The notes beneath the pieces are model-generated. The model worked only from the letters and a program-made list of their open reading frames with translations. It did not search any database and was not told where the DNA came from. Made by a program: the position numbers and the translations under genes. Of a stretch of 64,000 nt of DNA, positions 11,041 through 42,200 are shown piece after piece (position 1 is the stretch's first letter; every line of letters starts with the position of its first letter). Source of the stretch: Entomortierella parvispora E1425 (taxonomy: Eukaryota > Fungi > Mortierellomycota); the NCBI GenBank assembly GCA_020891255.1, contig BQFW01000015.1, positions 2,356,001 to 2,420,000 of the forward strand, written 5' to 3'.

Positions 11041-12959
11041 TTAAAAGTCGTGTTCAAACTCCATCATCCCACAGCTGGGAAACAGGTGGTTCAGCCAAGC
11101 AAAGTCTCTGTTCGTCATCCGTCGATCCACCCCCTTGCAAAAGATATACTTTAGACGCAACAGCTGAGGCGGTGCCTCTGTTTCTTCTTTTTCCTCCTCT
11201 TCGGGTGACAAAAGGAACATGTCCTTTTGGAACCCATATCCATCCAATATCAATCCTCCAGCTTCTCCAATTGATAGAGGTGTCGCCTGAAAGCCTTGGT
11301 ATTGCTTTCGTTGTTGAGAGAAGCATGCCCTTGCTCGTTAAAGTGAATAAACGACAGTTCAAGTTCCCGCAAGCTCTTGTAACAAATCCAGGGCCCTTGA
11401 TTTTCTTGGAACATGGATCCATCCAATCGACCGCACCGAACTCCAAGGGTTTGAAGACCTGGGCAGTTCTGAAGCATAGCCAAGACACCCGTGCAACTCA
11501 CACCTGGACTACCAGTTAGGTCCAATGTATGAAATCGAGAAGCCTGCTTGGGGAATGCGATCTGCAAAAGAACTCTGTCAGTGACTGAGGTTTGGACACA
11601 GGGACCGAATTCTAGTCCTTGAAGGCGATTGTTCAGATGAGAGGATATTTGGCAAGACTCACAGTACGGATGGCCCAGAGCGGCCTCACTCCGGCGGGGC
11701 TTTTGCTTTTGGAGATCAAAGTAATCGATCCAATCCTGCTCCCGAAAATTGGAACATCGAGTCTTGCATTGCAAGGTGGTAAGCTCAGGTGCGTAGGTTC
11801 GGATGGACTTCAGGAAAGTTGGATCATCAAGGCAGTGAATAGATAGTGCCACCAGGCAGGGCAGACGCTGCAGCAGCTTTGATAGAGCGCTTTTGCTTCG
11901 GATCTGACCCAGAGACAGCGTTAAAATGCCCGAACAATGTCTAGCGATCTCTCCATGCACCATGTCGGATTTTTGTCTTTTGGATTGACGGCGAGGTTCC
12001 TGCGCGGCCCCTCGTTTCGGAGGTAGATCTGAGGGCCGCAACCGGAACCTGGGAACATAGATGAATGGCTCCTCTTCGTTGTCCTTTTCGGTCGGCTCCT
12101 CCTCCAGGTCATCAAAGACGTCGCCAAAGTCGATGGCGACTCGTTTGAGCACCGCTCCTCCTTTTCTACCGTTCCAAGACCTGAGGAACAACAAGAGTAA
12201 AGATAGATGGATCGGGACCTCGAAATTGTCCACATGGTGATGTTTCCGTGAATGATAATGTGGGTATAGCCTGAACTCTTCTAGATTCTGCAAGCGGCGG
12301 TGCTTTCGTGGGGACAGGCCGATCCAGTGCAGAATCGACTCGCAGGCTCCCGGATGGACAATCAATTCAAGATGTCTCAACGAGTTTGAGAGGAAAGCGT
12401 TCGTGGGTGAGCGTAGGATCCGCGTGATGGTTTTCTTTGTGAGAGTATTCCTGGCGACTGCACCGGTTGAACCCTGAGGCTCGTTCTCCTCTCGGCTCGC
12501 GCGACCATCGTCGTCGTCCTTCACTGCCCCAATACCGAGAATTAGCCTCTCAAATTTTTGGTGCGTCAAACAAGGATACCTCACTTTCAGGTGCTTTAAT
12601 GTCCAAAAGGTATCCCGCACAATGTTGAGAAAGGTGTCCAGGATTTCCAAATTCCTGTAGTTGTAATCGATTTCGAGATATCGCACATGCGGGCCAACAC
12701 GCCGGAACAAGTGCTTGGACTGGACAGGATCCTGGACATGCTGTGGAAATCTGTACGAGATGTAGGGTCCATTGCTCGACCAGACGACGCCAATGAAGAG
12801 ATTGTACCGGGACTGAGAGACGAGACAGCAACGGCAGTGATCGTTTCTGGGAAGATAGGGAATGACACGATCAATAATGTCGGGGATGAAGACTCGCGTG
12901 ATGGCTGCCGTGGGACTGTCCGAGCACGGGAGTTTCCAAGGGGGTGGTGCGGCAGCCAT
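11041..12959 (-). CDS. F-box/leucine-rich-repeat (RNI-like) protein of the Mortierella-expanded type, interrupted by an apparent 1-bp deletion at about 11252
   Basis: F-box-like N-terminus (VFIPDIIDRVIPYLPRNDHCRCCLVSQ...VVW) and LRR-like repeats (LKHLKV, LRHLEL, CPGLQTL, PWICYKSLRELEL). The ORF stops at QLEKLED* while the adjacent frame continues LILDGYGF...LRLKYIFCKG...DFAWLNHLFPS. Confidence 0.75.
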
Positions 12960-13466
12960 TGGTAGGGTGTTGCGGGTTGGGTGCTATGGCAGAAGGCCTG
13001 GGAGAGAAGGGTGGGTGGGGGGAAACGAAGGGAAAAGAAAGAACTCAATAAATTATGAAAGAGAGTAGGGGAAATGAAATATGCAAGGAAAGGGAAACCA
13101 CCGCAGCAAACGGGAGTGCAGGCAGTGCAGGCACTTACTTGTTCAGACGTGTGGCTGTAAACAAAATGCATCATGAAGGCGTTGCATGGCAGTGTGTCTG
13201 TGCACTCGCCCGTTGGTCCCTGAGTGCTTCTGTGGACTGAACAGCACCTTTTATAGCATGGCACCCTTCTTCACACACGCGAAGAGGGCAACAAGGATAT
13301 CTACGTGTAGTCCGTCATGTGGATCATGGTCACAGTCAAGGTACCAAAGTACCCGTGCACGGATACATGCAGGTACAGTATATTTCAAATGGACCATGTT
13401 CATGTCCACGTAGTTTATTGCCCTCATATATGTCCTCTCTGGCCTTGAAAAAGCACGCAAGGGCAG

Positions 13467-26160: not shown

Positions 26161-28291
26161 TTAGTAGGTTCCGCAAAGCTTCTTGTTCCATGGCTTGTCG
26201 TTGGCACGCTTGTAAACAGGGCCGGAGGTGGTGGGGTTCAAGGCGCTATCGTCCTGGAGGTACTCTGTTCCATCCTCACGCTTCTTCAATGCGCCCGCAA
26301 GCGTAATCTTTGAGCAAGATTGGGAAGACTCACCAGCGCGAAGATCACAGATCATCTCGGTGGAGCAAGCACTGCCAGCAGCGCAGGCACCAATGAGTCC
26401 AGAAGACTTTCCACGGTAGGTCCAGTAATCGGTGAAGGCAGCGGCAGTGGACTCGAAGGCCAAGGTAACGTTGTGCCACCAAGCAGCGGAAAGAGGAGCG
26501 TTGTCGGCAATGGGGACATAGGCACCATAGGCCTGACGAGCAGAGTACTCCAAGTGCCAGTTAGGGGTGGCACCAGTGGCATCCCAAGTGGCAGCCTGGG
26601 AAAGATCGGCAGTGTAGGTCTCAGACTCGAAAACGTTCCAGGAGCCGTTGTCGACCTTGTAGATACGGAAACCGGGGTTCAAGTCAGTGTAAGGGGTGAC
26701 GGAGGGTCCGATCCAGGCCGTGGCAAGGGCGTTCTGGGACGACTGGGCACCAGGTCCGTAGTAAAGAGCAAACTCATCATAATGGGTGTGTCCAAAGAAC
26801 TGCTCGGCAATGACGTGGGGCGAGTAGCGCTGGACGACCTGGTAGTAAAGGGCAGACCAGTTCTGGAGACAGTCGGTCTGCGAGGGTCCGACGTGACCAA
26901 TGATCCAAACACGCTCACCAGCATCCTCGGCGGCCTGCAACTGAGTGATCAACCAGTTGATCTCACCATTGGGGTCGTAGTCGCTGGTATCGGCGTACAA
27001 GTAGAAGTTCATGGTGTAGCAGAACTGGGTATTCAAGGAGATGATGCGGAATCCAGGAACGGGGGAGACGGTGTAGGCACCGTAGTTCTTGACAGTGCTG
27101 GTGGCATCGGCGGGCAACCATTTGGCCCAGTCACTGGCCAAATCGTCGTACAACCAAGACAAGTCTCCACCAGAGGCCGTCGTGGGGAACAGGTTGGGGG
27201 GACCACCCTCATGGTTACCAACGGTAGGGTAGATTGTGCCAACAGCGGCCATGATATCGTAGGCAGCACTGATCTCACCAGGAACAGTGGAGGAGCTCTC
27301 CAGCCAGACATCATGAGGGGGCACATCACCGGTCAAGATCGAGAATGCGGGCGTAGCCACGGTGGGCAAGTACTGCAACATGTTCTGACCCAACTTGACA
27401 GGGGCATCGCAGTTGTAATCACCCCAGGACGCAGCCGAGCGGTTGACGGGGGTAGTCTGACCCGCGTAATTGCGGCAGCACAAGGGGTAGTCGCAGTTTG
27501 CCTCGGAACCAGGAGTGTATTGAGCATCGACGTGCCAGCTGTGAAAGAAGCGGGTAAACGGACAGACAATCAGGCAGGTTAGTCAACAATTGTGGGAGGC
27601 GATTTTTTTAGATAGCCCTGTGCATTGATCCCTCGTGGTCATCCTCTGCAAAGTGATAAACAATCCGACTTACTCAGAGAGGTGAAGAACTTCAATCTGG
27701 TTGCCGCTGGGGGGAGGGGCAACAGGGTTGGCAGGTCTGGGCTTGGGGAAGGTAAGGGTTCCTGAGCTAACGGCAGGGGCAGGGCAGATACCCATGACCT
27801 GGAAGCAAATCTCCTGCCCATCACCACCTGTAAGGTCGGCAGACAAGAGCGAGTCCAAGAGGACTGGTCCTTGCGAGTAAACCAATCCGGAGCACTATTG
27901 ACGTGGTTTTGTCAATGAACAGAAGGCGGGTCAAGTTAACGGCTTATCCTGACTTCTCGGATATTTGAAATTATAACAAAGAAAGCAGAAGGGGAAAAAA
28001 AAGGGCAATTACCACAGCGGCGGGCTCCTTTGCGAGGGTAGGGCAAAGGTCATTGATGGCATCCAGAACCCAGTCCTTGTTAAGATAGGCTACATCCTTG
28101 ATTCCGACCAACGCAGCCTCACAGGCATCGCACTCGAGTGTATTCAAGAGATCTTCGAGGAGAGACTCGATCTTGTCGAGGACCCAGCCACGCTTCGCCA
28201 ACTGGTGAACGGGCTTGGGAGTCACTGGGGCAGCGTAGACCGACGAGGCCACGGCCAACGACAGGATCACAGAAGGCAAGCTAATACGCAT
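26161..28291 (-). CDS. Acid sphingomyelinase-like metallophosphoesterase, copy 1 (signal peptide, saposin B domain, calcineurin-like phosphoesterase); 3 exons (28291-28013, 27894-27674, 27538-26161); about 625 aa
   Basis: Signal peptide and propeptide ending KR; saposin Cys pattern (LECDAC...LCP...CSG...ICFQVMGICP); metal ligands DWHVD, TGD, GNHE, GH, GHTH; NPGFRIY. Confidence 0.93.
26816..26928 (-). repeat. 113-bp tract identical to 35695-35807 in inverted orientation
   Basis: Base-by-base comparison of the reverse complement: GAGGATGCTGG...TACTCGCCCCA, 113/113 identical. Confidence 0.9.
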
Positions 28292-31200
28292 GGTATATTA
28301 TGATGGTATGATGGGAGGGTATAGAGATGAGAACTCGTTTCCTGAAAGGAAGTGTGAGGGGGAATATAGGGTGGAGGGATGAGTGCAAGGTCAAGGACAA
28401 GGGACAAAAAAAAAAAAAAATCGGAAGAAGGACGCGCGAACGGGGGGTTTATATACAGCGAGTTGTCAGTGGAGTGAGTGGGGGGGTAATGGCTCAGCCA
28501 GTAGCCCTCAACTTTACCTTCGGAAGAATACCGAACCGGCTATTATTGATGTCAGCCAGCAGGGTAGTTAGACCCTGAAGTCTTCTTTCAGGCACGCTCG
28601 TGCATCGAAAACAACAACACAAAACGACGAATTGGTTGGTGCCCGAGCCTCTGGGCAAGAAGGGGTAGTGTGTCAATAACAAACGCCAGTGATTCAATGA
28701 CCTGGAGGAAGAGAATGCAACAACAATGGACCGTTGAAGGAGGTGCGTGTGAAGAGAGAGGAACCGAAGCGTGCGCGTACATGCGAGCGAGGGAAAGGGG
28801 GCGGTTGGATGTCAGTTACCTTTTTCGATGATGTTTTCGATGATGTTTTCTCTGCAGGGCAAACCTTGCAGGCAGAAATGGACAAGCGTGTGTGTGTTGG
28901 ACACAAATCAGGCCTAAAGAGGGAACAGCCTTACCAACTGGCGCAGATCCAAAGACCTTGTTCTTCCAATGGAACGAGTCATGCTCCCACTCAGGGCCAA
29001 CTGACTGGGCCGCTGACCTTGTCGTCTGCCAGCAGGTATCGTTCATACTGTTGTTACATTGTCTGCAGGTCCATCTGCTGAGAATGAACATCAGGGGAGG
29101 ACTATCGTCTCCAACAGCAACAAGAGACCGGGCACAGTAACAATATGAGGGAGGGTGTCCGCCGCCCAATCCCCCAGAGTACCTGCGCCTACGTGTGAAT
29201 TTACCTTTCTCTCCTTGGCTAGTGAGAACTACCTTCGGAATGTGGCTCTCATCGCTGTCCGTCACAGACTGGAGCTGGCTGCTCTTGTCTGCCCAATGAC
29301 CACATGTGGCCACGCTTGTTGCGAGAGAGGGCAAACCCTCTTGCGGAATGTTTAGTCAATAGCCTTGAGCCCGATCGAATGAATAGCGGATTGACTTGTG
29401 TGACCATGTTATTCCAGAATGCTGCGTGTCCCTTTCAATTGAATTGGATCCTCCTCGTCGTGCACTCCTCTGCTTTCTCTCCTCCCTCTTCCGTTGATCA
29501 CCCTGAACTCTTTTTCGCAAGGTGGTCGTTGTCGTGGGTGTGCCTGCACCCTGAAGTCAAAGAGAGCAGGCCGAATGGAAACAGGCTCCCTCTGTTCCAC
29601 ACCTCCCCTCCCCCCTTTTTCTATTCGCTGCTCTACCTCTTGGAGACAGACATCACTGCTGGAGAAGAACTCTTTGCTCCAACAGCAATAGAAAAAGGCA
29701 AAAATCTTGAGCAGCGTAATAACAGGAACATTGTTGCTGGACTGAACTATCCTGTAGACTAAAACTCAAAGAAGAATCATCACCGTCAACAAACCTCAAG
29801 TACGTACAACAACAATCACTGGATTTTTTCTCCACAACGCGCACCGACCCGGCAAACCGGATAAAATCCTAGTCATTGCCTTTTGGTCCGTAAAACAGGC
29901 TAGAGAGAGAGGAAAGCCCTTATGGTCTTCAAAAGCTGAAAAGAGCTTGCTCCGTTTTCTGCGTCAGGGGCTCGGAAGGTCTTTCAAGTCCGAAGAGGCT
30001 ATCTCTCATAAGGCTCTATTTCGGATGACAAACAGCTCCAGTGAAAAATGGGATCCTCACATCCGAACAAAAAAAAGGATCAACGTGGCTCTCAGTCTGG
30101 TCGTAGGATTTTAAGGAGGGACCATGTGCCCGAAAGAGCATCTTTGGATTGGATCGACTTTGTGCCCTAGACGTGGAAGATCCTATTTCAAGTCCAGCTC
30201 CAGAGCACCAGTCTTGGACCTCTATCAAAGTATCTACATATAACTAGTGGGCGTTCATCGTCTAGGTAAGTAGGAAGTCGAGAAATGTGCGAACAGATAG
30301 AACGTCGCTCCTCTCTACAGTATTGATTTTTCAATCACGGCACAACGTCAAATTGTTGATCCTTGGATTAGAATCGATCGACCGTTGGAATGCAGGGGAT
30401 GAAGAGTGTGGGAGTTGACAATAGACGACAGAACAGAATGTTTTTTGTTTTTTTTTGTCTGCAGGGTCAATGTCAATTGAAAGCGCAATGTCCTCCTCCC
30501 CCTTTACCCTCAAGGGCAAGGACGAGGTACAAAGGAGTCGCATGACAAAGGGATTGGACAAGAAGTCAGCCATGGCCAGCGAATAGAAACGATAACCAGG
30601 CAACAAAGGGTCCAGGGGAAGGAGGCCCAAGGGCTGGACCGGGCACAGACTCTTTGTTTTGTTAGGGAAAGAATGAAAGAATGTTTGCATTAATGACGAC
30701 GAGTGTTCTTGTGGTTTCTGTGCCATTTCAGCAAAGCGCGATCGGTTTGCGTTCGCTGGTACTTTGCAGCGATACATCTTTGTCTGGACAACCAGCTTTC
30801 CTCACCCACAATCCACTCGCGATTGTGGACACAAGAGAAGACGGTGGAAGGGACGGCGTCGACCCAGGGATATTGGCCACAAAGCTTGCACCTCCCCTCT
30901 GTCTTGGTTAACAAGTTGTTCCTTTGAGACCAAACACCTTCGCCTTGTAATTGTGTAGTGTTTCCAAAACAACAAGACAGAGTTGTTATCTTTTGTTTAG
31001 CCTGGACAAGGGCCATTTCGCGCGCGAGGCAAGGGGGGAACACAATGTCTCTTTGCAACCCTCTTGGAGAACACACGACACCTCATCCCACCCAGCGAAG
31101 ACCTTCTTTCAAGATGGCATGTGAGTTTTATTTACATCGGATCAACTTTGAGTATATTGTCTTGGACTTTGATCTTCTTGCGACACCTGCCCTTCTACAA

Positions 31201-34200
31201 GGAACTCTGCTGCTGATGGATTGTACTGTCGCATGCCAGCCTAGAATCAATTTCGTTTTCAAAAACTTGAAAACTAGAATCACCGTATAGATGCTGCGCG
31301 CTGCACAATTTCCGTAGATGTCCGACTCCGGATGAACCCACTATTGACAGTTTCAAATGGCATTGGTCTTTTCTTGATCAGTCCATTCGGATCTCTGAAC
31401 CGGACTCTCATATGGGGGATAACGAGAATGCCGGCCTTCTTTCAGACTTTTTTCACGCAGACTATTATTGCTTCTGGATCGACGGCGGAGGGCAGTTAAT
31501 GAGGTGGCTGCCATAAAGTTAATTGTGGAAAAGGAACGTCAGCGAGTAAAATCCACGCGAGCCCTTTCCGTGCTGCGGCCTCGCGATCTGGTTGGCGGAT
31601 GAGGAACACGCGTTTGGGACGGGGTGCCTCAGAAACGCGTGTAAAAATTCCCAAGCAGAGGGCCATTGTGGTCGCTGTTTGAATGTTGGTCCAATTGCTC
31701 GATTCTGGAGGACAAAAAAAAAGAGGGGGAATGGATCCTCCTGCGGGCTCACTCGTAGACCATGTGCACCAACGATACGTCCATGGCAGATCCTGGATTT
31801 GTCGGTATCGACACGTTCAGTGCTAGCAGTGAGAATAGAGCCTTTTTCATGGGAAATCGGAAGATGCTTAAAATCAGCTCCCGAGAAAACGTAGAAGGCG
31901 TGAGCAGGATATCGGCCAAGGTGTGTGTGTGCATGGGGCAATCGATTGGACCCTGGCTCATGCTCTTGGCTGACAGCATCTCTGCTTACAGCAAGGGGAA
32001 AGGCCGAGGCCGGTTGGTTCTTCCTTGTCTATTCAATGTATGAACTAACTTTGCCCCTTCATGTTCCATCTCGCTCTTGCAACAGATAGAGGCGAGGGCA
32101 AAACTCGAACAGGCACTTCTCGTTGAAATGAAAGCCCTGAATGCACCTGATGGGAAAATCGTACTTTTTTGCTGATGTACTTCCCTGCGCCCTGTCAGAC
32201 GAGCGCTTGAATGTTGTTTTCAACCGTCTCAGTGAGGGATCACAGTCCTTTTTCCGTTGTGAAAGAGGTTTTGTTTTTCTTTCTCGCGCTTTCTTCATCA
32301 TGCCGGGGGGTCCGAGGGTCTCTTTGATAGCTCTCGTGCATTAGTGACCCCCACATGCCCTCTCAACTGTAATTACTGCTGTTGTCACAAAGCTGGCGCC
32401 TCTGCGCGCCTCCTTCGTTGTCTTTGACACATGTCCCGCATCTTCCCTTCTCTTTACGCTAGCTCGACCCTCTTCATCAATTGTGGACGCAATTCGGCCC
32501 ATGAGAGTGGAGAAACCAAATTCCATTGGCCATGTTGCCATCCAATCACCCCCTTTGCATCGGGCACAGCGCGCTAAGGAATGGGCCCTTGGCGGCGCGC
32601 AGAACTATATTCAACCTTTGGTGCTGGTTGTTCTTGCATGTGCAAAAAAAAAAACAGACCTTCCTACCATTGCAGATCAGACGCTGGCCTCGGTTCTACC
32701 TTCGTTGTCTCGATAGTACAAAGACGGCAGCCCCGCTATCGGCTGGCGCTAATCAGATCTCAAATAGCCGTTCTGGCCGCTTCTAGCTACGACTTTTGCT
32801 GCAGTCTCTTCCTGCAGTGGTACCTTGGTTCCCACGGGGCTGACACATTGAGATGCTCAATGACACAATTGGTAGCCTTCTGCTGCACAGTGAAAATAAC
32901 TTCCATCGTTCCTGGAGACAGGTACCTGAAATAAGAATGGAAACCTCATTGGATCTACAAATCAAGGGCCGAAGACTCCAAAGTGACTACCCTCCTGCAG
33001 GTACGTACCGCTTGCAAGGTAGCCCATTCCTTAGACTTTCTTTCTCCATTCTTTGAGGTGCATGGCAGCCATGCTCTCAACCTCTGCTGATGTCAATAGC
33101 CCTTTTGAAGTCGAAGAAAGGACTAGAAAGAAGACTTCAAGGGAGGCGTCACAAGAAAGCCCTTTGCTATTTGACAGGTATTTCTGATGACAATTTGCTC
33201 GGTTGTATTCAACCGAAGGTATCCATGCACCTGTACACTAGTCTGTTCAATTCAGTTCGACTCTAATAGCAGCCAAAACAACAACAAATAAAAAACTAAA
33301 CGGAGGCGCGCTCGAGGAAACAAAACCTCTGTTGACAAGAACACAACACAAGGGACCTTGGAATGTTGATGGATGACATGACCAAAGAGCAATGGTCGAA
33401 TTCTTTCCTGCTGGCCGGTAGGACAAGCATGTGTGTGGGAAAAGACCTTTTTTCGACATTGTCAAACTTCAGGCTAACGGCTCTCAACAGTTCAGTTTTT
33501 ATTTGTTTTTTTTTTGGTTTTTGGTTTCTTCCTCATGATCTAGAATACAACTTTTATTTTTTGTTCCCTTTGTCTTCTTGAGCGAAGCGAAGAGTGGAGC
33601 GCCAAAGGAAAGGAAGGGTTGTTCTGGCGGATGAGAAAACAAAAGAACGCGCTCGCTCTTTCACTTTTGTGGTCGATCAATTGCACTCTGTACACGCCAT
33701 CTCACTATTTTGCAGGCCCGACAGTCTTGGAGACTTGACCTGGAGTCACCATCCCCGACGCCACGTTCAGAGCTCAGAGGATGGGATGAACGACACCTTC
33801 ACCACCATGCAAGGCGAGAGTTGATCCGGCTCGCCAATGCAAGCGGTTGCTGCCATCACTCAACTCACCCCACCATCCATTGACCCTCCGCTGCCGTCCA
33901 TTTCGCTGGTTAGTCTCTGGTCACTGGTGCGCCTGGGCAATCAAGCGCAATGTAATTCAATCGGCCATTTTCAAGATTGCACTTTGCCGCCTTGTGTACC
34001 TGCATGCTCTTTGTGTGCTCGATCCTCGCTCCCCCTCCTTCCCCTTTCCTTGCTCTCCACATTTCCTCGGTAACTTTGCAAACGTTATTCTGCAAACCCA
34101 GGGTTCGTCGCCAGTCAACGCCAATGCTCCTCCTCTTCTATTCTCGATATCCTCACCACACCCATCCCTCTTCGCCCCTCTGCCCTTCCTTGACTGCATC

Positions 34201-34479
34201 ATACTTCTGCTCTCACTTGTCGTCACTATTCTATCCTTTTCATTGTTTTCCTGCATTGTTGATGAGACCCTCTTGTCCATCTTCGCCTGCTTATATAAAG
34301 GACCCTCCGCCCGCGGTTCTTGTGTTGCTCTTTGTCCTCGACCTCGCCTTCATACCCTTACAACAGCCTCTTTCCCCCTCTCTCCTGTCCTTGCCAAGGT
34401 CTGACCTCCTTCTACCTACACCCTTCCCCATCTTCCCCACCCTCATCACCTGTACATTTTTAAACCTCCCGCTATCAAA

Positions 34480-36471
34480 ATGAAGATCGGCTTTCCTACC
34501 GTTATCCTCTCGCTCGTGGCCGCGTCAGCTGTCTACGCTGCCCCCACCATGCCTGCCACTGACCTCGAAAAGCGCGGCTGGGTCATGGATCAACTGAGGC
34601 CCTTGTTCGAGAAGGCCATCAAGACTCTGGAGTGCGGTGCCTGTGTGTCGGCCTTGGTCGCCGCCAAGGACCTTGCCTACCTGAACAGAAACTGGGTCTT
34701 GGATGCTGTTTCAGGCATCTGTACCGAGTTCAAGGTCATGCCCAAGGATGTGGTACGTTCTCTTTCTCTTTGAAGATGTAAAAAAAAATCTTATCTCGCG
34801 CTTTTAGAAACGGCAATTGAACAAATATCCTTTACATCCATCTATTTGTACATCTAGTGCCAAGGTTTGGTGTACTCTCAAGGACCTGTCCTCCTCGAGT
34901 CCGTCATGCAGGCCAGTTTGTTGTCAGGCGATGGCAAGAACATTTGCTTCCAGGTCTTGGGAGCTTGCCCAGCCCCCGGAATCACATCTGGAACTCTGTC
35001 CTTCCCCAAGGCTCGCCCTTCCAACATTGCCAACATCACCCACAGCGGTCAGTACGCCGATGTCCTTCACTTGTCGGATTGGCACGTTGACCCCGAGTAC
35101 GTGACCGGAGGAGAGGGCGATTGTAATCGTCCTCTTTGCTGCCGCAAGTACGCCGACTCACCTTTGGTCCCCAAGCGCGCTGCCTCATCCTGGGGCGATT
35201 TCAAGTGCGATTCTCCTGTCAAGTTGGGCCAGGATCTCCTGAAGCACGTCCCCAAGGTCGCAAATGTCTCCTTCACGATTTTAACAGGCGATGTGCCTCC
35301 TCACGATGTTTGGTTGCAGAACAAGGATACCGTCGTCGTGGTCGAGGAGATGGCCTACTCGACCATGAAGTCTGGTCTTTCCTCCAAGGTCTACCCCACA
35401 GTTGGTAACCACGAGGCTGGTCCTACCAACTTGTTCCCTACCGAGGCCAGCGGTGGTAACATCCAATGGCTCTACGACAGCTTGGCAGACGACTGGTCCC
35501 GCTGGTTGCCCTCGGATGCTGTCAACTCTGTGAAGCACTATGGTGCCTACACTGTCAGCCCCGCCCCTGGTTTCCGTATCATCTCCCTCAACAACAACTT
35601 CTGCTACACCCTCAACTTTTACCTTTATGCCAAAACCAAGGATTACGATCCCAACGGTGAACTCAAGTGGCTCATTTCTCAGCTTCAGGCCGCTGAGGAT
35701 GCTGGTGAGCGTGTTTGGATCATTGGTCACGTCGGACCCTCGCAGACCGACTGTCTCCAGAACTGGTCTGCCCTTTACTACCAGGTCGTCCAGCGCTACT
35801 CGCCCCATGTCATTGCTGAGCAGTTCTTTGGACACACCCATTATGATGAGTTTGCCCTTTACTACGGACCTGGTGCCAAGTCGACTCAGAATGCCATTTC
35901 CACGGCCTGGATCGGACCCTCCGTCACCCCTTACACCGATTTGAACCCCGGTTACCGTGTTTACAAGGTCGACACCAAGTCCTGGAACGTCTTTGACTCC
36001 CAGACCTACGTTGCTGATCTTTCCCAGGCTGCTACTTGGGATGCCACCGGTGCTACCCCCAACTGGCACTTGGAGTACTCTGCTCGTCAGGCCTATGGTG
36101 CCTATGTCCCCATTGCCGATAACGCTCCTCTTTCCGCTGCTTGGTGGCACGATGTGACCAAGGCGTTCGAAAAGACCCCTGCTGCTTTCACCCAGTATTG
36201 GAACCACCGTGGCAAGTCAGCCAACAGACTTCCTGCCTGTGCTCCCGGAAGCGCTTGCGCGGCCGAGATGATCTGCAATCTCCGTGCCGGTAAATCCTCG
36301 GATGCTTGCTCAAAGATCTCGTTCTCGTTGAAGAAGCGCGAGGACGGCGTTTTGGAGGCTAAGACCATGGAGGTCGAGGCCGAGGACCCCTCGGGCTTGC
36401 ATAGCTTGTACAAGCGAGCTGAGCCCCAGCCCTGGAACAAGAAGCTCTGCGGATTGGGATCCCAGATCTAA
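34480..36471 (+). CDS. Acid sphingomyelinase-like metallophosphoesterase, copy 2; 2 exons (34480-34752, 34858-36471); about 628 aa
   Basis: Same architecture as copy 1: signal peptide, LEKR propeptide, saposin domain, DWHVD, TGD, GNHE, GHTH. It lacks the intron that interrupts the D-W-H codons in copy 1. Confidence 0.94.
35695..35807 (+). repeat. 113-bp tract identical to 26816-26928 (inverted partner)
   Basis: Direct comparison, 113/113. A second tract, 36061-36150, matches 26473-26562 at 89/90. Confidence 0.9.
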
Positions 36472-36673
36472 AAGGGACAGAAACCACCCCCCTTCAATTT
36501 ACTCGTGTAGATATATCATCATCTAGTGCAGTTATTCATATATAAAATAACAACAAAAAAAAACAACAACAAACAACAGTAGCAATCATTCCATGGTGAG
36601 AGGAGGCAGGTGGCCAATGGACTGGCGGGACAAGGAGCATTGGTATATTTTTCCAGCCTGACACATTGAGATA

Positions 36674-37749
36674 CTATGTGGAACTCATGCTCTTTGCTCG
36701 GATCATATCGACGTTGTCGCCCGTCATCCTCCGTGAGAATTCCTGCACCCTGGTACTGCAGTATTCAGTGAACATCAAAATCTGTATCTCTTCTGGCAAA
36801 TATCTAACAGCAAAGGAAAAAAAATAGGGATCGGTTTTAGTCTTGATTGCGTGTCGACGTGTCTAAATCCATCTTGTCCCTTCTCCTCCAACTCTCTCAC
36901 TCCTTTGTCTATGCGAGAGTCCTCATTATCTACCTCTTGAGAGACAAGATCAAGTCCTCGAGACCTCCCATGTCCAGCATTTCGTCCATGCGATCGATCA
37001 CCACCATTTTGACATTTGTCACGTCCACCATTTGACGTCTTATCATTAGGGCGAGTTTCCCGGGTGTCGAGACCATAACGTGGCCTTGAACCTTTTCCCT
37101 TGGAGCCACATCAATCATGCGGGGTGCAAAAGTCACTTCAGGCATATTCTTTGCATAGTCCATAATGCAACTCCGAACATTCCAAGAGAGCTCCCTCGAA
37201 AATACAAGTACCAGGACCTAGATTTTATCGTGAAAAAGGAAAGGGGGTTGTGTGTCAGATAGCAAGGAAACGAACGATTTGAACGAGCTCAAAAGCTTCA
37301 CTTTGTACCTGTGTATCTGAGATAGTGGAATCGATGCTATTCAAGGCGGGGACTGAATAGGTGACTATTGAGTTGTACGCTCCTATCGATCGCGAATCAA
37401 CAAGGACGTTCTGGGGTGACTTTTGCAACATGATTAACGGTAGAACGTGCTGTTGAAGTTTTGAAAGATTCTCTGACCGACAATCGCGAATGCCTTGCAT
37501 CAAACCATCTTTTCTGTGATCCAGCGTTCCATACGCAAAAAAAAGACACAGCGGCAGGGAAAGAGAGAGAACAAAAAACGCGGATTAGACGTTAGTGCGT
37601 ATGGTTGACGTTGTGAGTTGTCCTTTGTTTTGTCAAACATCTCCTATTTACAAGTTTAGGTCTTCAAACGAAGAGATTGGCCGGAGAACAATCCTTGGGT
37701 CTACGATATCCGCAACGATCTCCAATCCAAATTCCTCCAATTGGTCCAT
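36674..37749 (-). CDS. Degenerate Dbp5/DDX19-like DEAD-box N-terminal (RecA1) domain-only protein; exons 37749-37652, 37513-37309, 37217-36934, 36803-36674; about 238 aa (the frame is also open to an upstream ATG at 37977)
   Basis: The spliced product aligns colinearly with Dbp5 as I recall it: SSFEDLNL, GI..., SKLQQHVLPL, PQNVL, SREL, STPG, MLDMGGLEDL...KRYLPEEIQ. Three GT-AG introns all preserve frame (717 nt total). Confidence 0.8.
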
Positions 37750-38138
37750 GAATAATGAGATACAGCTTATTCCTATGGGAGAAAAGGTGGTGTATGGATA
37801 AGTGGCTGACTCGGTTGTTTTGCTCGTTCTCCTTGTCAAAAAAGGGCAGTTATTCTCTGATAAAGATGACTGGGAAAACTCACTAGGATTACCGTTGTAG
37901 CCCTGATCCTGTAGGGAAGCGAGGGAATGAATGAGGGTTGATTGATGATGGAGAGAGGAACAGACCACGTCCTCCATGAAGTGCGTGCGCGATGAATTGG
38001 TGGCAAAGTCACGTGTTCATTCCACTGGCGGCCGCTGGCCACCGACTGATCAACACATTCAGTTTCGTGTCCATCAAACAAACAATTGCCTCTCATCCCT
38101 TCACCAAACAGGAAACACACATTACATTCCCAACAGCC

Positions 38139-39021
38139 ATGGCAGGATCTAAATCAACCGCAGGAGCATCAGGACGTGTTCAAAAGAAGAAGCCTGGTCC
38201 AAAGGCCGCGGCTGCATCTGCTCCAGCCCCCGCAGCCGTCTACCGCGGCTCTGCAAAGGGGGTCACAGAGTTGCCCGTGGCCAGAATCAAGCGTATTATC
38301 AAGGAAGACAAGGATATCGGACTCGTCAGCAACGACGCCGTCTTCTTGATCAGTCTCGCTACTGTAAGAACGGAGAAACCTGCCAGAGGACCGACTCTTG
38401 ACGCCAAGGCGACAGACAATAGGGTCCATACTGACTCTTTGCTTTTGCCATTGTAGGAATACTTTCTGGAGTCATTCACACAAAAGGCCTTTAATTTGGC
38501 AAAGATCGAAAAGAAGAAGAGTGTATTCTACAAACATCTCGGTAAGCAACTCTTTCCTACATAAAGCAAACATAGGATGACTGGGAAACAACAAGGGAAT
38601 AGAACAAAGAGGAACAAAAAAGATGGTCTCATGTTACAACTCCACTCATATCGGTTTCCTTGTACATCCAATAGCCACGGCAGTAACACAGCACGACTCA
38701 CTCGAGTTCCTTCAAGGTGAAAACAGACTCTATCCGCACCGTTCATGGAACCCAGTTGATGTTTGTGAACAGGTTCTTACTAGTTTTCCTTTGTTATTAG
38801 ACGTTATTCCAAAGACTATGCCCTTGTCAGAAGCACTGGAACGGAGACAGACCGCCATGGAACAGGAAGAGCAAGGAGGCGACATGGAAACTGGAGAAGG
38901 AGAGGATGATGATCAGGAACAACAGGATGATGAGGAACCTCGGTCAGAGACAGAAGACACTAGTCGGCCAATGTCAGAAGACGAGGAATTGTCGGCACCA
39001 GACGACATGGATGAGGATTAA
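38139..39021 (+). CDS. Histone-fold (H2A-like NF-YC/NC2-alpha/Dpb3-POLE4 class) protein, most likely Pol epsilon Dpb3/POLE4 or CHRAC-like; 4 exons; about 190 aa
   Basis: ELPVARIKRIIKEDKDI...DAVFLISLATEYFLESF...HLATAV...LEFLQDVIP after splicing (38139-38363, 38457-38541, 38675-38716, 38801-39021); acidic tail. Confidence 0.85.
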
Positions 39022-39211
39022 AAGAAGGATATTGCCTTATCTCTTTCCTCTAGTCTTTTTCCCCACATCAAAAATCTACCATTATCAGTAATAAACATGG
39101 ACCACCATCAACAAACATTGTAACAAGTTCAGAAAAGCAATGATTTTTTTTTATTTCATATTTCAAATATTTGTTCCAGGAGTCAAAAGAAAGGACACCC
39201 ATTCATTCGAT

Positions 39212-42200
39212 CTAGTTCTCGGAACCCAGAGCAAAGGATTGGCGTATGGTCCAGAAAGGTCCTGCCTGGAGAGCCTTAGACTTGGGCGCTGATTTCTCGA
39301 ATGCATCAAACATAGTATTGCCGCTCCACAGACCCAGCTCTCCTTGGGCATCTTCGACAATCCATGGCAAGATCTGGATATGGGCGGATGTATCTTTGGT
39401 TGAAGAAGCCTCAGAGCCATACATCATCACCTTGAGTTCATTCAACTTTCCAGAGCCGGACTTATGGATCAATCCGCTCATAAGGTAAAAGTCATGCTGA
39501 GGCGAATCTGATCCGAAATAACGGCCGACCAGAACATTGTTCAGGATGATCATGGCCGAGAACTCGCCTCGGATTCGACAACAGAGAGGAACATCAGCCG
39601 TAAGGCCAGTGCCATCATCCTCGGGCTGTGGAGGAGGGTTGTGGCGAGAGGAAGACGAGGCAGACACAGGAGGAGAGGGCACACCGGCGGAAGGAGGTCC
39701 TTCAAACTGGGTGCGCCACCAAGTTACACCTCGGTCTGGAACCACCGAGGGCAATTCGGCCGTCGCTTTCCAGCCCTTGGACTCGTGTTCATCTGGGAAG
39801 CCTGTGCTTCCATAGGCCATATCCAATTCTCGGACATCCACACCTGCGACTTGCCACTTCTCGCTGCCCTTGACGACTGTCTTGCCCTGCACTCTGGCCG
39901 AAAGCAATCCTCGAGGGTTACGGATGTCATCCACCACAAACGGCTGACGACTCAAACCCAAGGAATCAATCACAAGGATAATTTCGTGCGTCTGCTCCTC
40001 CGCACGCGAAGCCGCAAGGAGCCGCTGTCGCTCTGGGTTGGGCTCAGAGTTCTGACGCTCATGGATCATGCCCTTTGTCGCCGCGGCCTCGAGGGCCTTA
40101 GTCGTGATCAAGAACTTGTGCGTTCCGCGCGAGATAGGGTCGTAACCCATCTTGGCACCTGGTCGCATCAACTGCCTGGAGTAGGTCATGTGGGATCCGA
40201 TACAGACGCCGTTCACATAGGCAATGACTCGATGACGCGAGTTAAGCTTGAGCCAGATGGGTTGGGCATCTTTACCCGTGGCGGCAACAGTACCTCCAAA
40301 GCGACGGTGGTAAGGTGTGGTCTTGAACTGAGCGCGGTACAGGATGTGACCAGATGTGAAGTGGTAGTCCAGGTTGACATTCTCGAACAAGTCTGACTTG
40401 GGAGCCTTGCGTGGGCACTCTTTCCAGTCCATGATACCGAAATCGGTTGTACGAGTCTGCCATCTCGAAAGTTCCAATCCACTTTGGTTGCGAGAGACCC
40501 ATCCTGCATATGAACCTCGAGCCTCTTCAAGGACAGTCTCGGTCTCGGTCAAAGGAATCGTCTGCAAGGCCAAACCGGGTCCAAAGTCTGAAAGCTCGTT
40601 CACAGGGACAGTGTTGGCATCGCCAAAGGAAAGGATATGCATCTCCTTTTGAGATTCAGTCGATTCGACCGTAAGAGTCTTTTGATCAGGATCATACAGA
40701 GCGTTGTAAGATCCCCAAGTGACAATCTTGGGGGAAGAGGCCATCGCACTGGCGTCGACAGCAGAGTGCTTGCCATCAGCGCGTCTGCGACCATGTCGGT
40801 TATCATAGTAGCAGTACAGAGTGGACAACTCTTGCTGGCCCAAAAAGATGATATGGAGGACTGGGTCGGTGGGGGCCTGGTTGGCACTGCCAAGGACAAC
40901 GAATGCATCCTTGGCTCCCTCAGGAACCGACAGGACACAGACATTTCGGTCGCCTGAGGAAGGACGGATCTTGATACCGTTCTCGGCCGTCATGTTGCGT
41001 CCGCCGGCACTTTGGATCACCAATGCACCTCGGAAGGCCATCTCGGTGGGACCACGACCGGCCAGGGCAGCGATCCAGACTTCCGACTTGTGTGGGTAGT
41101 GGTGCTTCTGGTAAAGCTTGCCAAGGTCACCACCAGAGAAACCACGGATGTGAATGGGGGTAGCGGAGAGAACCAAGTGAATGTCTCGGTTGAGGGTCGT
41201 GTAATTGCCCAGAGCAATAAACGACGACTTGTACGGTGCAAAGCATTTCAGCTTGGTGACACTTCGTCTATCGCTGAGCTCATCCGCAAGTGACGAAAGC
41301 TCAAACTGGTCGACCTTCTTGTGGGAGAAATTGCGGATGAAGGTCAACTCGACGGGGCCACTGCGGTAAGTCAACACCTTGGATTCGCGCTGTTGACAGA
41401 CTGTATTGTAGACGGACGATTTGACGGTTCTTGACCTCTTGTTGGTGATCTCGTCCGTCTGGACAAGGATGTCCGAGAACGATTGGAGGAACAAAAGGCC
41501 GAGGCGGAGGGTTCGCAGGCGGCCAGACATGAGTCCAAACTCGCGAATACTGGCGCTGTAATCGTAAGAGGTGTAAACATCACTGGAGGGGAAAGATGAG
41601 GGATGATGAGAGAAAGGGTCAGATAACTGAGATCGCACCTGGATCAAGCTCAAGCGGCTGCATCCAAATAAAGCTTTAGACTTACCTGTCACCAATGGTG
41701 CCCCAATTGGTACCACCATAAAACATGTAGAAGTTCAGCATGGTACAGCCTTGTGAAAAGACGGTATCGAGCATCAATCGACTATACTTTTCGCCATAAA
41801 ACTTGTAGATCTCATCGTAGGTATACTTGATTCCGTAGTGGTTGAACCAACCGCCTTGGAGTTCAGGAATAAAGATGGGCGTCTTCAGGTTGGCATGACC
41901 AAAGGAGCGGACTTTTCTTTCCATCGAGTCGAGCTCGGACCGCACAGTCGTGGGATCCCATTCTTTGAGATGAGAGGAATCTCGACCGACGACCCACGAG
42001 GATGGTTCGCTGTTGGGTGTGAATACTTTTTACCATGCAAAAAAGGGAAAAAGAAAGGGGAAAAAAAGCAATCAGTCCGGAGTCCCAAGCGCGTTACTGT
42101 GGTTGTGCCACCGACTATCACATCGAGTTTTCGTCCCGTTGTCTTATTGTGTTTGCTTACCTACGTACTTGTCGAACCCATACAAGTCCACGCCAAAGTC

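Follow-up and report, generated by a model that had tools for sequence, protein, structure and literature searches.

The gene EMPS_11418 of the fungus Entomortierella parvispora lies on the minus strand of a 64-kb stretch of contig BQFW01000015.1 (assembly GCA_020891255.1), and the whole of this stretch is referred to here as the window. The best joint explanation of our observations, held with moderate confidence, is that the locus is a genuine protein-coding gene for a lineage-restricted paralogue of the helicase Dbp5/DDX19, which has been cut down to the first RecA domain (RecA1) and which has a probable binding role. The product has lost its catalytic motifs, and a similarly inactive orthologue was found in Gryganskiella cystojenkinii. 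This orthologue, the evidence for selection on the pair and the clean loss of the gene in a relative are new, whereas the annotated gene itself was known before.

Gene model, fold and motifs of EMPS_11418

Four minus-strand segments (37977-37652, 37513-37309, 37217-36934 and 36803-36674) join into a single open frame of 945 nt, and all three introns between them have GT..AG ends. The translated product has 314 amino acids (aa) when read from the first ATG (37977) and 238 aa when read from the ATG at 37749, and the 238-aa product is identical letter for letter to EMPS_11418, a "hypothetical protein" in GenBank that is named "Helicase ATP-binding domain-containing protein" in UniRef. The E. parvispora genome was annotated by AUGUSTUS with cDNA derived from RNA-seq on a Nanopore assembly polished with Illumina reads (PMC8759367), and the AUGUSTUS model is exactly the 238-aa form; an RNA-seq set of E. 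parvispora exists (DRA013164). An original prediction made from the letters of the window had proposed that four open reading frame (ORF) fragments are spliced in frame at three GT-AG introns into about 238 aa, which is confirmed by the join and by the identity to EMPS_11418; its description of the gene as hidden has to be dropped, as the AUGUSTUS model was already present in both databases. When the ORFs of exons 1 and 3 were looked up letter for letter in search of other isolates or unspliced contigs, no further match was obtained, and no paper discussing EMPS_11418 was found. The parts of the gene are as follows.

37750..37977, minus strand: in-frame upstream extension of 76 codons from ATG 37977, outside the annotated model
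37652..37749, minus strand: exon 1 of the annotated coding sequence, from ATG 37749; reads MDQLEEF...SSFEDLN, ends in phase 2 with donor GTAAAT
37514..37651, minus strand: intron 1, 138 nt, GT..AG; position and phase common to Gryganskiella (there across a contig gap)
37309..37513, minus strand: exon 2, with LSKLQ (37453-37467), the LPL..PQN block (37399-37443) and SRSIGAYNSI (37366-37395)
37218..37308, minus strand: intron 2, 91 nt, phase 0, after ..TQ; same position in Gryganskiella and in genuine fungal Dbp5
36934..37217, minus strand: exon 3, with FSRELS (37185-37202), STPGK (37056-37070), VIDRMD (36984-37001) and the start of the Dbp5-specific helix
36804..36933, minus strand: intron 3, 130 nt, phase 2, in the codon after ..LK; same in Gryganskiella and in genuine Dbp5
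36674..36803, minus strand: exon 4, with RYLP..QI, FTEY (36761-36772) and the stop TAG (36674-36676) at the boundary of RecA1 and the second RecA domain (RecA2)

Sequence comparison and predicted fold place EMPS_11418 in the DEAD-domain superfamily, as a descendant of the Dbp5/DDX19 branch. The only family found in a Pfam search was DEAD (PF00270; E 7e-12, 45.8 bits against a cut-off of 26), with no Helicase_C. The protein is colinear with the whole first RecA domain of Dbp5/DDX19, and the 13 best matches of a phmmer search against the PDB all belong to Dbp5/DDX19, the top one being the N-terminal domain of yeast Dbp5 (2kbe, E 2e-24, residues 13-223 against 8-216). Dbp5 scores 89.7 bits in this search and Sub2 70.7, while DeaD and eIF4A-III are likewise about 20 bits below Dbp5; exon 2 searched alone retrieves DDX19B/Dbp5 chains only. 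A maximum-likelihood tree was built from 20 RecA1 domains, with the other eukaryotic subfamilies thinly sampled; in it, EMPS_11418 and the Gryganskiella orthologue group with three Dbp5 sequences (support 99/99), the two terminal branches measuring 4.4 and 3.6 substitutions per site compared to 0.06-0.5 for Dbp5. The AlphaFold2 model, built from a 20-row alignment, has a mean predicted local distance difference test score (pLDDT) of 86 and a predicted template modelling score of 0.85, and the ESM Atlas model of the identical sequence has a pLDDT of 0.84. The best Foldseek matches are the N-terminal domains of DDX19 in the NUP214 complexes 3fmo_B and 3fhc_B, with template modelling scores of 0.83-0.91.

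Alignment to Dbp5 shows that motif I (the P-loop) has changed from SQSGTGKT to SRSIGAYNSI, which lacks the lysine, motif II from VLDEAD to VIDRMD and motif III from FSAT to FTEY. The Q-motif glutamine is kept (LSKLQ), motif Ib is intact (TPG in STPGK) and motif Ia is kept in part, with FSRELS in place of PTRELA. A RecA2 domain was sought by tblastn with two full-length Dbp5 proteins, and none was found in the window or on the Gryganskiella contigs L001 and L006. Four hallmarks of a DEAD-box helicase are missing, namely the GKT of motif I, the DEAD of motif II, the SAT of motif III and a RecA2 domain with motifs IV-VI; activation by Gle1 and inositol hexakisphosphate, which works through RecA2, has no domain to act on. 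These losses show that the predicted product cannot be an ATPase or a helicase. The assignment to a single RecA1 domain of the Dbp5/DDX19 type, the missing RecA2 and the loss of the Walker A, DEAD and SAT motifs had all been claimed in the original prediction, and the searches and the alignment bear these claims out.

Gryganskiella orthologue and selection

An unannotated syntenic orthologue was found in G. cystojenkinii at L006:7948-8282 and L001:10704-11714. The local gene order in E. parvispora is an acid sphingomyelinase-like gene (plus strand), EMPS_11418 (minus), a histone-fold gene (plus) and a GH35 beta-galactosidase gene (minus). The Gryganskiella orthologue is split over two contigs (JAAAIG010001242.1 and JAAAIG010001049.1) that both break off at the same poly-T run within intron 1. 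The contig with the sphingomyelinase orthologue (85% aa identity) ends within the pseudo-helicase gene, and the one with the GH35 and histone-fold orthologues ends just past the matching exon 1. This exon (L006:7948-8018) has M-D, DPRIV and the donor phase in common with exon 1 of E. parvispora, and the four Gryganskiella exons join into an open frame of 242 aa. All three intron positions and phases are common to both species, as is the stop at the RecA1/RecA2 boundary. The Gryganskiella motifs are equally dead, with SGSGEI for motif I, DRAH for motif II and SDS for motif III. Identity is 38% between the two proteins and 30-34% between either of them and Dbp5. Between the end of the Gryganskiella pseudo-helicase and the sphingomyelinase gene there are about 3.3 kb and a 495-aa gene, so the truncation in this species was not forced by lack of space.

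The two orthologues show a pattern of change that is expected of a coding sequence under selection. Identity at codon positions 1, 2 and 3 is 0.53, 0.65 and 0.35, respectively, in the protein-guided as well as in the nucleotide-only alignment (chi-square, p = 2e-9). The number of nonsynonymous substitutions per site (dN) is 0.57 and that of synonymous substitutions (dS) is saturated, being at least 1.9 by the LWL85 method and undefined by NG86, while the neighbouring sphingomyelinase gene has a dN of 0.115 and a dS of 1.07 in the same species pair. A dN/dS of about 0.3-0.5, with dS saturated, indicates that selection on the putative protein is relaxed yet purifying, as the ratio stays below 1, and is not what decay would leave. 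Both frames are intact although neutral divergence exceeds 1 substitution per site; in a neutral simulation of 0.5 substitutions per site per lineage and no other type of mutation, the frame stayed open in about 2 of 10,000 runs (about 2e-4). The two species have 84 identical residues, of which 36 go back to Dbp5 and 34 are shared-derived, among them residues in DPRIV, DYA..MPE.T and M.VIDR. The equal change at all codon positions and the broken frames of a pseudogene are thus not seen in this pair, even though the pseudo-helicases evolve about ten times faster than Dbp5. Based on the codon-position pattern, the shared-derived residues and the intact frames, we read this as an inactivation and truncation that would have occurred before the two genera split, with the product probably kept as a protein since then. 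The original prediction had argued for selection rather than simple decay, a view that these three lines of evidence from two genera support, and had asked for dN/dS, which is provided by the value above, and for orthologues across the Mortierellaceae. The last of these was answered in part, as one orthologue with equally dead motifs was found in Gryganskiella and none at the other loci of the family that were examined.

The frame is also open upstream of the annotated start in both species, for 76 codons in E. parvispora and for about 115 in Gryganskiella (L006:7603-7947). The 76-codon extension (37750-37977) shows no convincing conservation against the open Gryganskiella stretch, and the two stretches are not clearly similar except for SC.S..MD right at the start codon. 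A second DP..S.F-like stretch occurs in the Gryganskiella upstream sequence. The 495-aa Gryganskiella gene mentioned above (L001:8232-10318) has no Pfam match and is absent from the window, and a second, similar N-terminal stretch was observed after it.

Putative binding role and rival explanations

Since a confidently folded single domain without catalytic motifs appears to be under selection, EMPS_11418 probably acts by binding and not by catalysis. The likeliest partner would be one that is already bound by the first domain of Dbp5. It is with this domain that Dbp5 docks on Nup159/NUP214, the surface used overlapping the one for RNA binding, and an isolated N-terminal construct of DDX19 suffices for NUP214 binding (PMC5998080). 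The best-kept Dbp5-specific block in the pseudo-helicases is the helix after motif II (LD.QGLG.Q..R.KR.LP), which contains the positions of yeast R256 and R259, and LPL..NPP.N is the other strongly kept block. In yeast Dbp5, R256, Y325 and K382 are listed among the lethal positions within the regions that bind Gle1 and Nup159 (PMC6711706), human DDX19B R259A, equivalent to yeast R256, has been used as a NUP214-binding-defective allele (PMC5037575) and the mouse substitutions R261A/D, equivalent to yeast R259, abrogate Nup214 binding (PMC4309436). Our comparison of the docking surface covers these two arginines; both are present in Gryganskiella, whereas E. parvispora has S193 at the R256 position and R196 at the other.

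Provided that the gene has a function, we give a clearly minority chance to a partner that is either the beta-propeller of Nup159/NUP214 or RNA bound at the overlapping surface. The protein would then compete with or modulate Dbp5 docking, along the lines of the adaptor or decoy put forward in the original prediction, which is a reasonable guess from the kept blocks and a weaker one for E. parvispora itself, and a partner unrelated to the nuclear pore is about as likely. A more specific version, which we consider quite unlikely, is that the protein is a fast-evolving, catalytically dead and dispensable decoy of the Dbp5 docking domain. Such a decoy would sit on the beta-propeller of Nup159, or sequester a factor targeting the first domain of Dbp5, and would thereby modulate or safeguard the final step in the export of mRNA. 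E. parvispora is known to carry Burkholderia-related endobacteria; the factor could come from these or from a fungal virus.

Several observations weigh against the reading of EMPS_11418 as a selected, RecA1-only binding protein. We infer the exon-1 join of the Gryganskiella model across a contig gap, and the exact EMPS_11418 protein and its exon ORFs are recorded solely on the genome contig. The dN/dS is a bound, as it comes from two highly diverged orthologues with saturated dS. The serine at the R256-equivalent position in E. parvispora weakens the case for docking on the nucleoporin. No copy was found at the sphingomyelinase-anchored loci of Mortierella alpina and Gamsiella or, with tblastn included, at the GH35-anchored loci of Dissophora, E. 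lignicola and E. beljakovae. Furthermore, in the closest relative available, a soil-metagenome fungus (GH35 93% aa-identical, about 84% nucleotide identity), 373 unrelated bp replace about 1466 bp between the sphingomyelinase and histone-fold genes with no gene remnant, as seen on two contigs whose independence is doubtful at 99.95% identity.

The main rival, which is doubtful although it still carries some weight, is a functional non-catalytic protein with a partner outside the nuclear pore, in which the RecA1 scaffold was re-used after truncation for a new interaction with protein or RNA, and the working site is marked by the 34 shared-derived residues rather than by the Dbp5 surface that was kept. 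It would account for the many conserved shared-derived residues (DPRIV, DYA..MPE.T, M.VIDR), the extremely long branches in the RecA1 tree, the missing R256-equivalent in E. parvispora and the loss of the Dbp5 N-terminal extension, but the Dbp5-specific blocks with the strongest retention (LPL..NPP.N and LD..GLG.Q..R.KR.LP) make up the Dbp5-type surface and Gryganskiella has both arginines. We regard it as unlikely that EMPS_11418 is instead a dead relic, that is, a truncated Dbp5 duplicate that is non-functional in E. parvispora and has so far escaped a disabling mutation. On the one hand, every catalytic motif and half of the enzyme are gone, evolution is very fast, the deletion in the nearest relative is traceless and the GC content at third codon positions is 0.55, compared to 0.60-0.68 in the neighbouring genes. 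On the other, both orthologues have kept an open frame, every splice site and a stop in the same region across more than 1 neutral substitution per site (a simulated chance of about 2e-4 per lineage), conservation is much higher at second than at third codon positions, the 34 shared-derived residues are kept and the fold is modelled with high confidence. E. parvispora alone may have lost the function recently. It is hardly credible that the gene is a conventional two-domain helicase with missed RecA2 exons, or an artefact of assembly or annotation; nothing speaks for it except that fungal gene models are hard to call in general. Nothing similar to RecA2 occurs in the window or on the Gryganskiella contigs, 202 bp separate the stop codon (36674-36676) from the stop of the convergent sphingomyelinase gene (36471), as had been anticipated (about 200 bp), and the orthologue ends at the same boundary despite about 3.3 kb to its sphingomyelinase gene. 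The assembly combines Nanopore reads with Illumina polishing, and the catalytic residues of RecA1 would be gone in any case.

The selected RecA1-only binding protein, which we prefer, can be compared with several known systems. Dbp5/DDX19 is essential and is not known to have natural single-domain, non-catalytic paralogues; no description of a selected single-domain Dbp5 derivative was found in a non-exhaustive literature search. The mRNA-export DEAD-box ATPase Dbp5 (yeast) or DDX19A/B (human) is the best match of EMPS_11418 in sequence and fold and falls in the same clade of the tree, and the blocks LPL..NPP.N.I and LD.QGLG.Q..R.KR.LP as well as two intron positions of genuine fungal Dbp5 are shared. 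EMPS_11418 differs from it in lacking the N-terminal extension and RecA2, which carries motifs IV-VI and is the main Gle1-binding domain (PMC5998080), in the loss of the P-loop Lys/Thr, the DEAD Glu/Asp and the SAT, and in its roughly tenfold faster evolution within one small clade, in one member of which it was lost. Laboratory N-terminal fragments of DDX19/Dbp5 (3fhc_B, 3fmo_B and 2kbe) have the same boundaries and fold, but they are pieces of an active enzyme with intact motifs, whereas EMPS_11418 is a gene product with dead motifs in which one docking arginine is replaced by serine. Utp25/Def keeps both of its RecA-like domains and is essential. Like EMPS_11418, this 'pseudohelicase' of the small subunit processome derives from a DEAD-box protein, has lost the catalytic motifs and is thought to be structural, but it resembles full DEAD-box helicases (PMC9539457), while EMPS_11418 is a single-domain, young, lineage-restricted and dispensable protein. 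Motif-degenerate DEAD copies recur in eukaryotes, as seen in two public eIF4A-like proteins with tandem RecA1 domains (P0137, with DEAE/DDAD in motif II, and P0244, with DDID/DDLD); these have an eIF4A-like parent family, are multi-domain and are not orthologous to EMPS_11418. Another public model of 1780 aa (P0122), with three DDX3-like cores, looks like a mis-joined tandem array.

If EMPS_11418 is indeed a selected RecA1-only protein, it would be a ready-made probe of the Nup159/NUP214-docking domain without ATP, RNA clamping or Gle1, and it would extend the short list of helicase-derived pseudoenzymes with a clear case. The claim is a modest one, as it concerns one small fungal clade, with a loss in one member and a putative partner.

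Origin, distribution and neighbouring genes

Introns 2 and 3 of EMPS_11418 are at the positions of introns in genuine fungal Dbp5 genes from two metagenome loci (L015 and L016), and Dbp5 fragments retrieved in the search of protein representatives read through introns at these positions as well (e.g., P0142 for intron 2). Intron 1 was not found in the two genuine Dbp5 loci. Because the two Dbp5 introns were retained, the copy would have been made at the DNA level, by a partial duplication of Dbp5 before the split of E. parvispora and Gryganskiella. ATP binding and hydrolysis would have been lost early, as both species have an arginine in place of the glutamate in DEAD, lack the P-loop lysine and threonine and stop at the interdomain linker. 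The inactivated copy would then have evolved about ten times faster than Dbp5 while under purifying selection as a protein, and would later have been deleted in a sister lineage. Transposon capture was rejected, as no terminal or flanking repeats occur at the segment.

No annotated orthologue was found among the representatives of about 15 billion proteins. A word-based search with EMPS_11418 returned ordinary DEAD-box proteins only, and in an exhaustive HMMER search with exon 3 the only match below 1e-30 was EMPS_11418 itself, followed by canonical Dbp5/DEAD-box fragments. Among the matches listed, those without DExD/H were unrelated eIF4A-like or bacterial sequences, and a pattern scan of the Joint Genome Institute (JGI) metagenomes, derived from both orthologues, found canonical VIDEAD helicases only.

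The gene order in Dissophora, E. lignicola and E. beljakovae is GH35, histone-fold, Cyt-b5, acetyltransferase and MAP65, and the order GH35, histone-fold, Cyt-b5 is ancestral. In M. alpina and Gamsiella the sphingomyelinase genes are beside a DNA ligase gene, the other flank being MutS in M. alpina. In E. parvispora, Gryganskiella and the metagenome relative, a sphingomyelinase gene instead adjoins the histone-fold side (window 36471-39212). Since none of these other Mortierellaceae loci, with their differing gene order, carries a copy, the position of the pseudo-helicase coincides with a synteny breakpoint that is peculiar to the clade of E. parvispora and Gryganskiella. The most parsimonious reading is that the metagenome relative has lost the gene, and its deletion in this sister lineage implies that it is dispensable. 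The segment concerned and the two flanking genes are listed below.

36530..37994, no strand: segment without counterpart in the closest relative (metagenome contigs L002/L007 and L008)
34867..36471, plus strand: acid sphingomyelinase-like gene, last exon; convergent neighbour and synteny anchor
38143..39021, plus strand: histone-fold (CBFD_NFYB_HMF) gene; divergent neighbour and synteny anchor, starting 393 bp from ATG 37749

The distance of 393 bp between the starts of the histone-fold gene and EMPS_11418 suggests a possible shared promoter region. At the neighbouring genes, E. parvispora and Gryganskiella are 85% (sphingomyelinase) and 67% (GH35) identical, compared to 71-73% and 53-55% between E. 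parvispora and E. chlamydospora, E. lignicola and E. beljakovae; this closeness to Gryganskiella at both loci conflicts with the genus name. In E. parvispora the sphingomyelinase neighbour forms a divergent pair with a second such gene (window 26161-36471; L005, genes at 11279-13270 and from 19459), and three such genes are found in tandem in M. alpina and Gamsiella.

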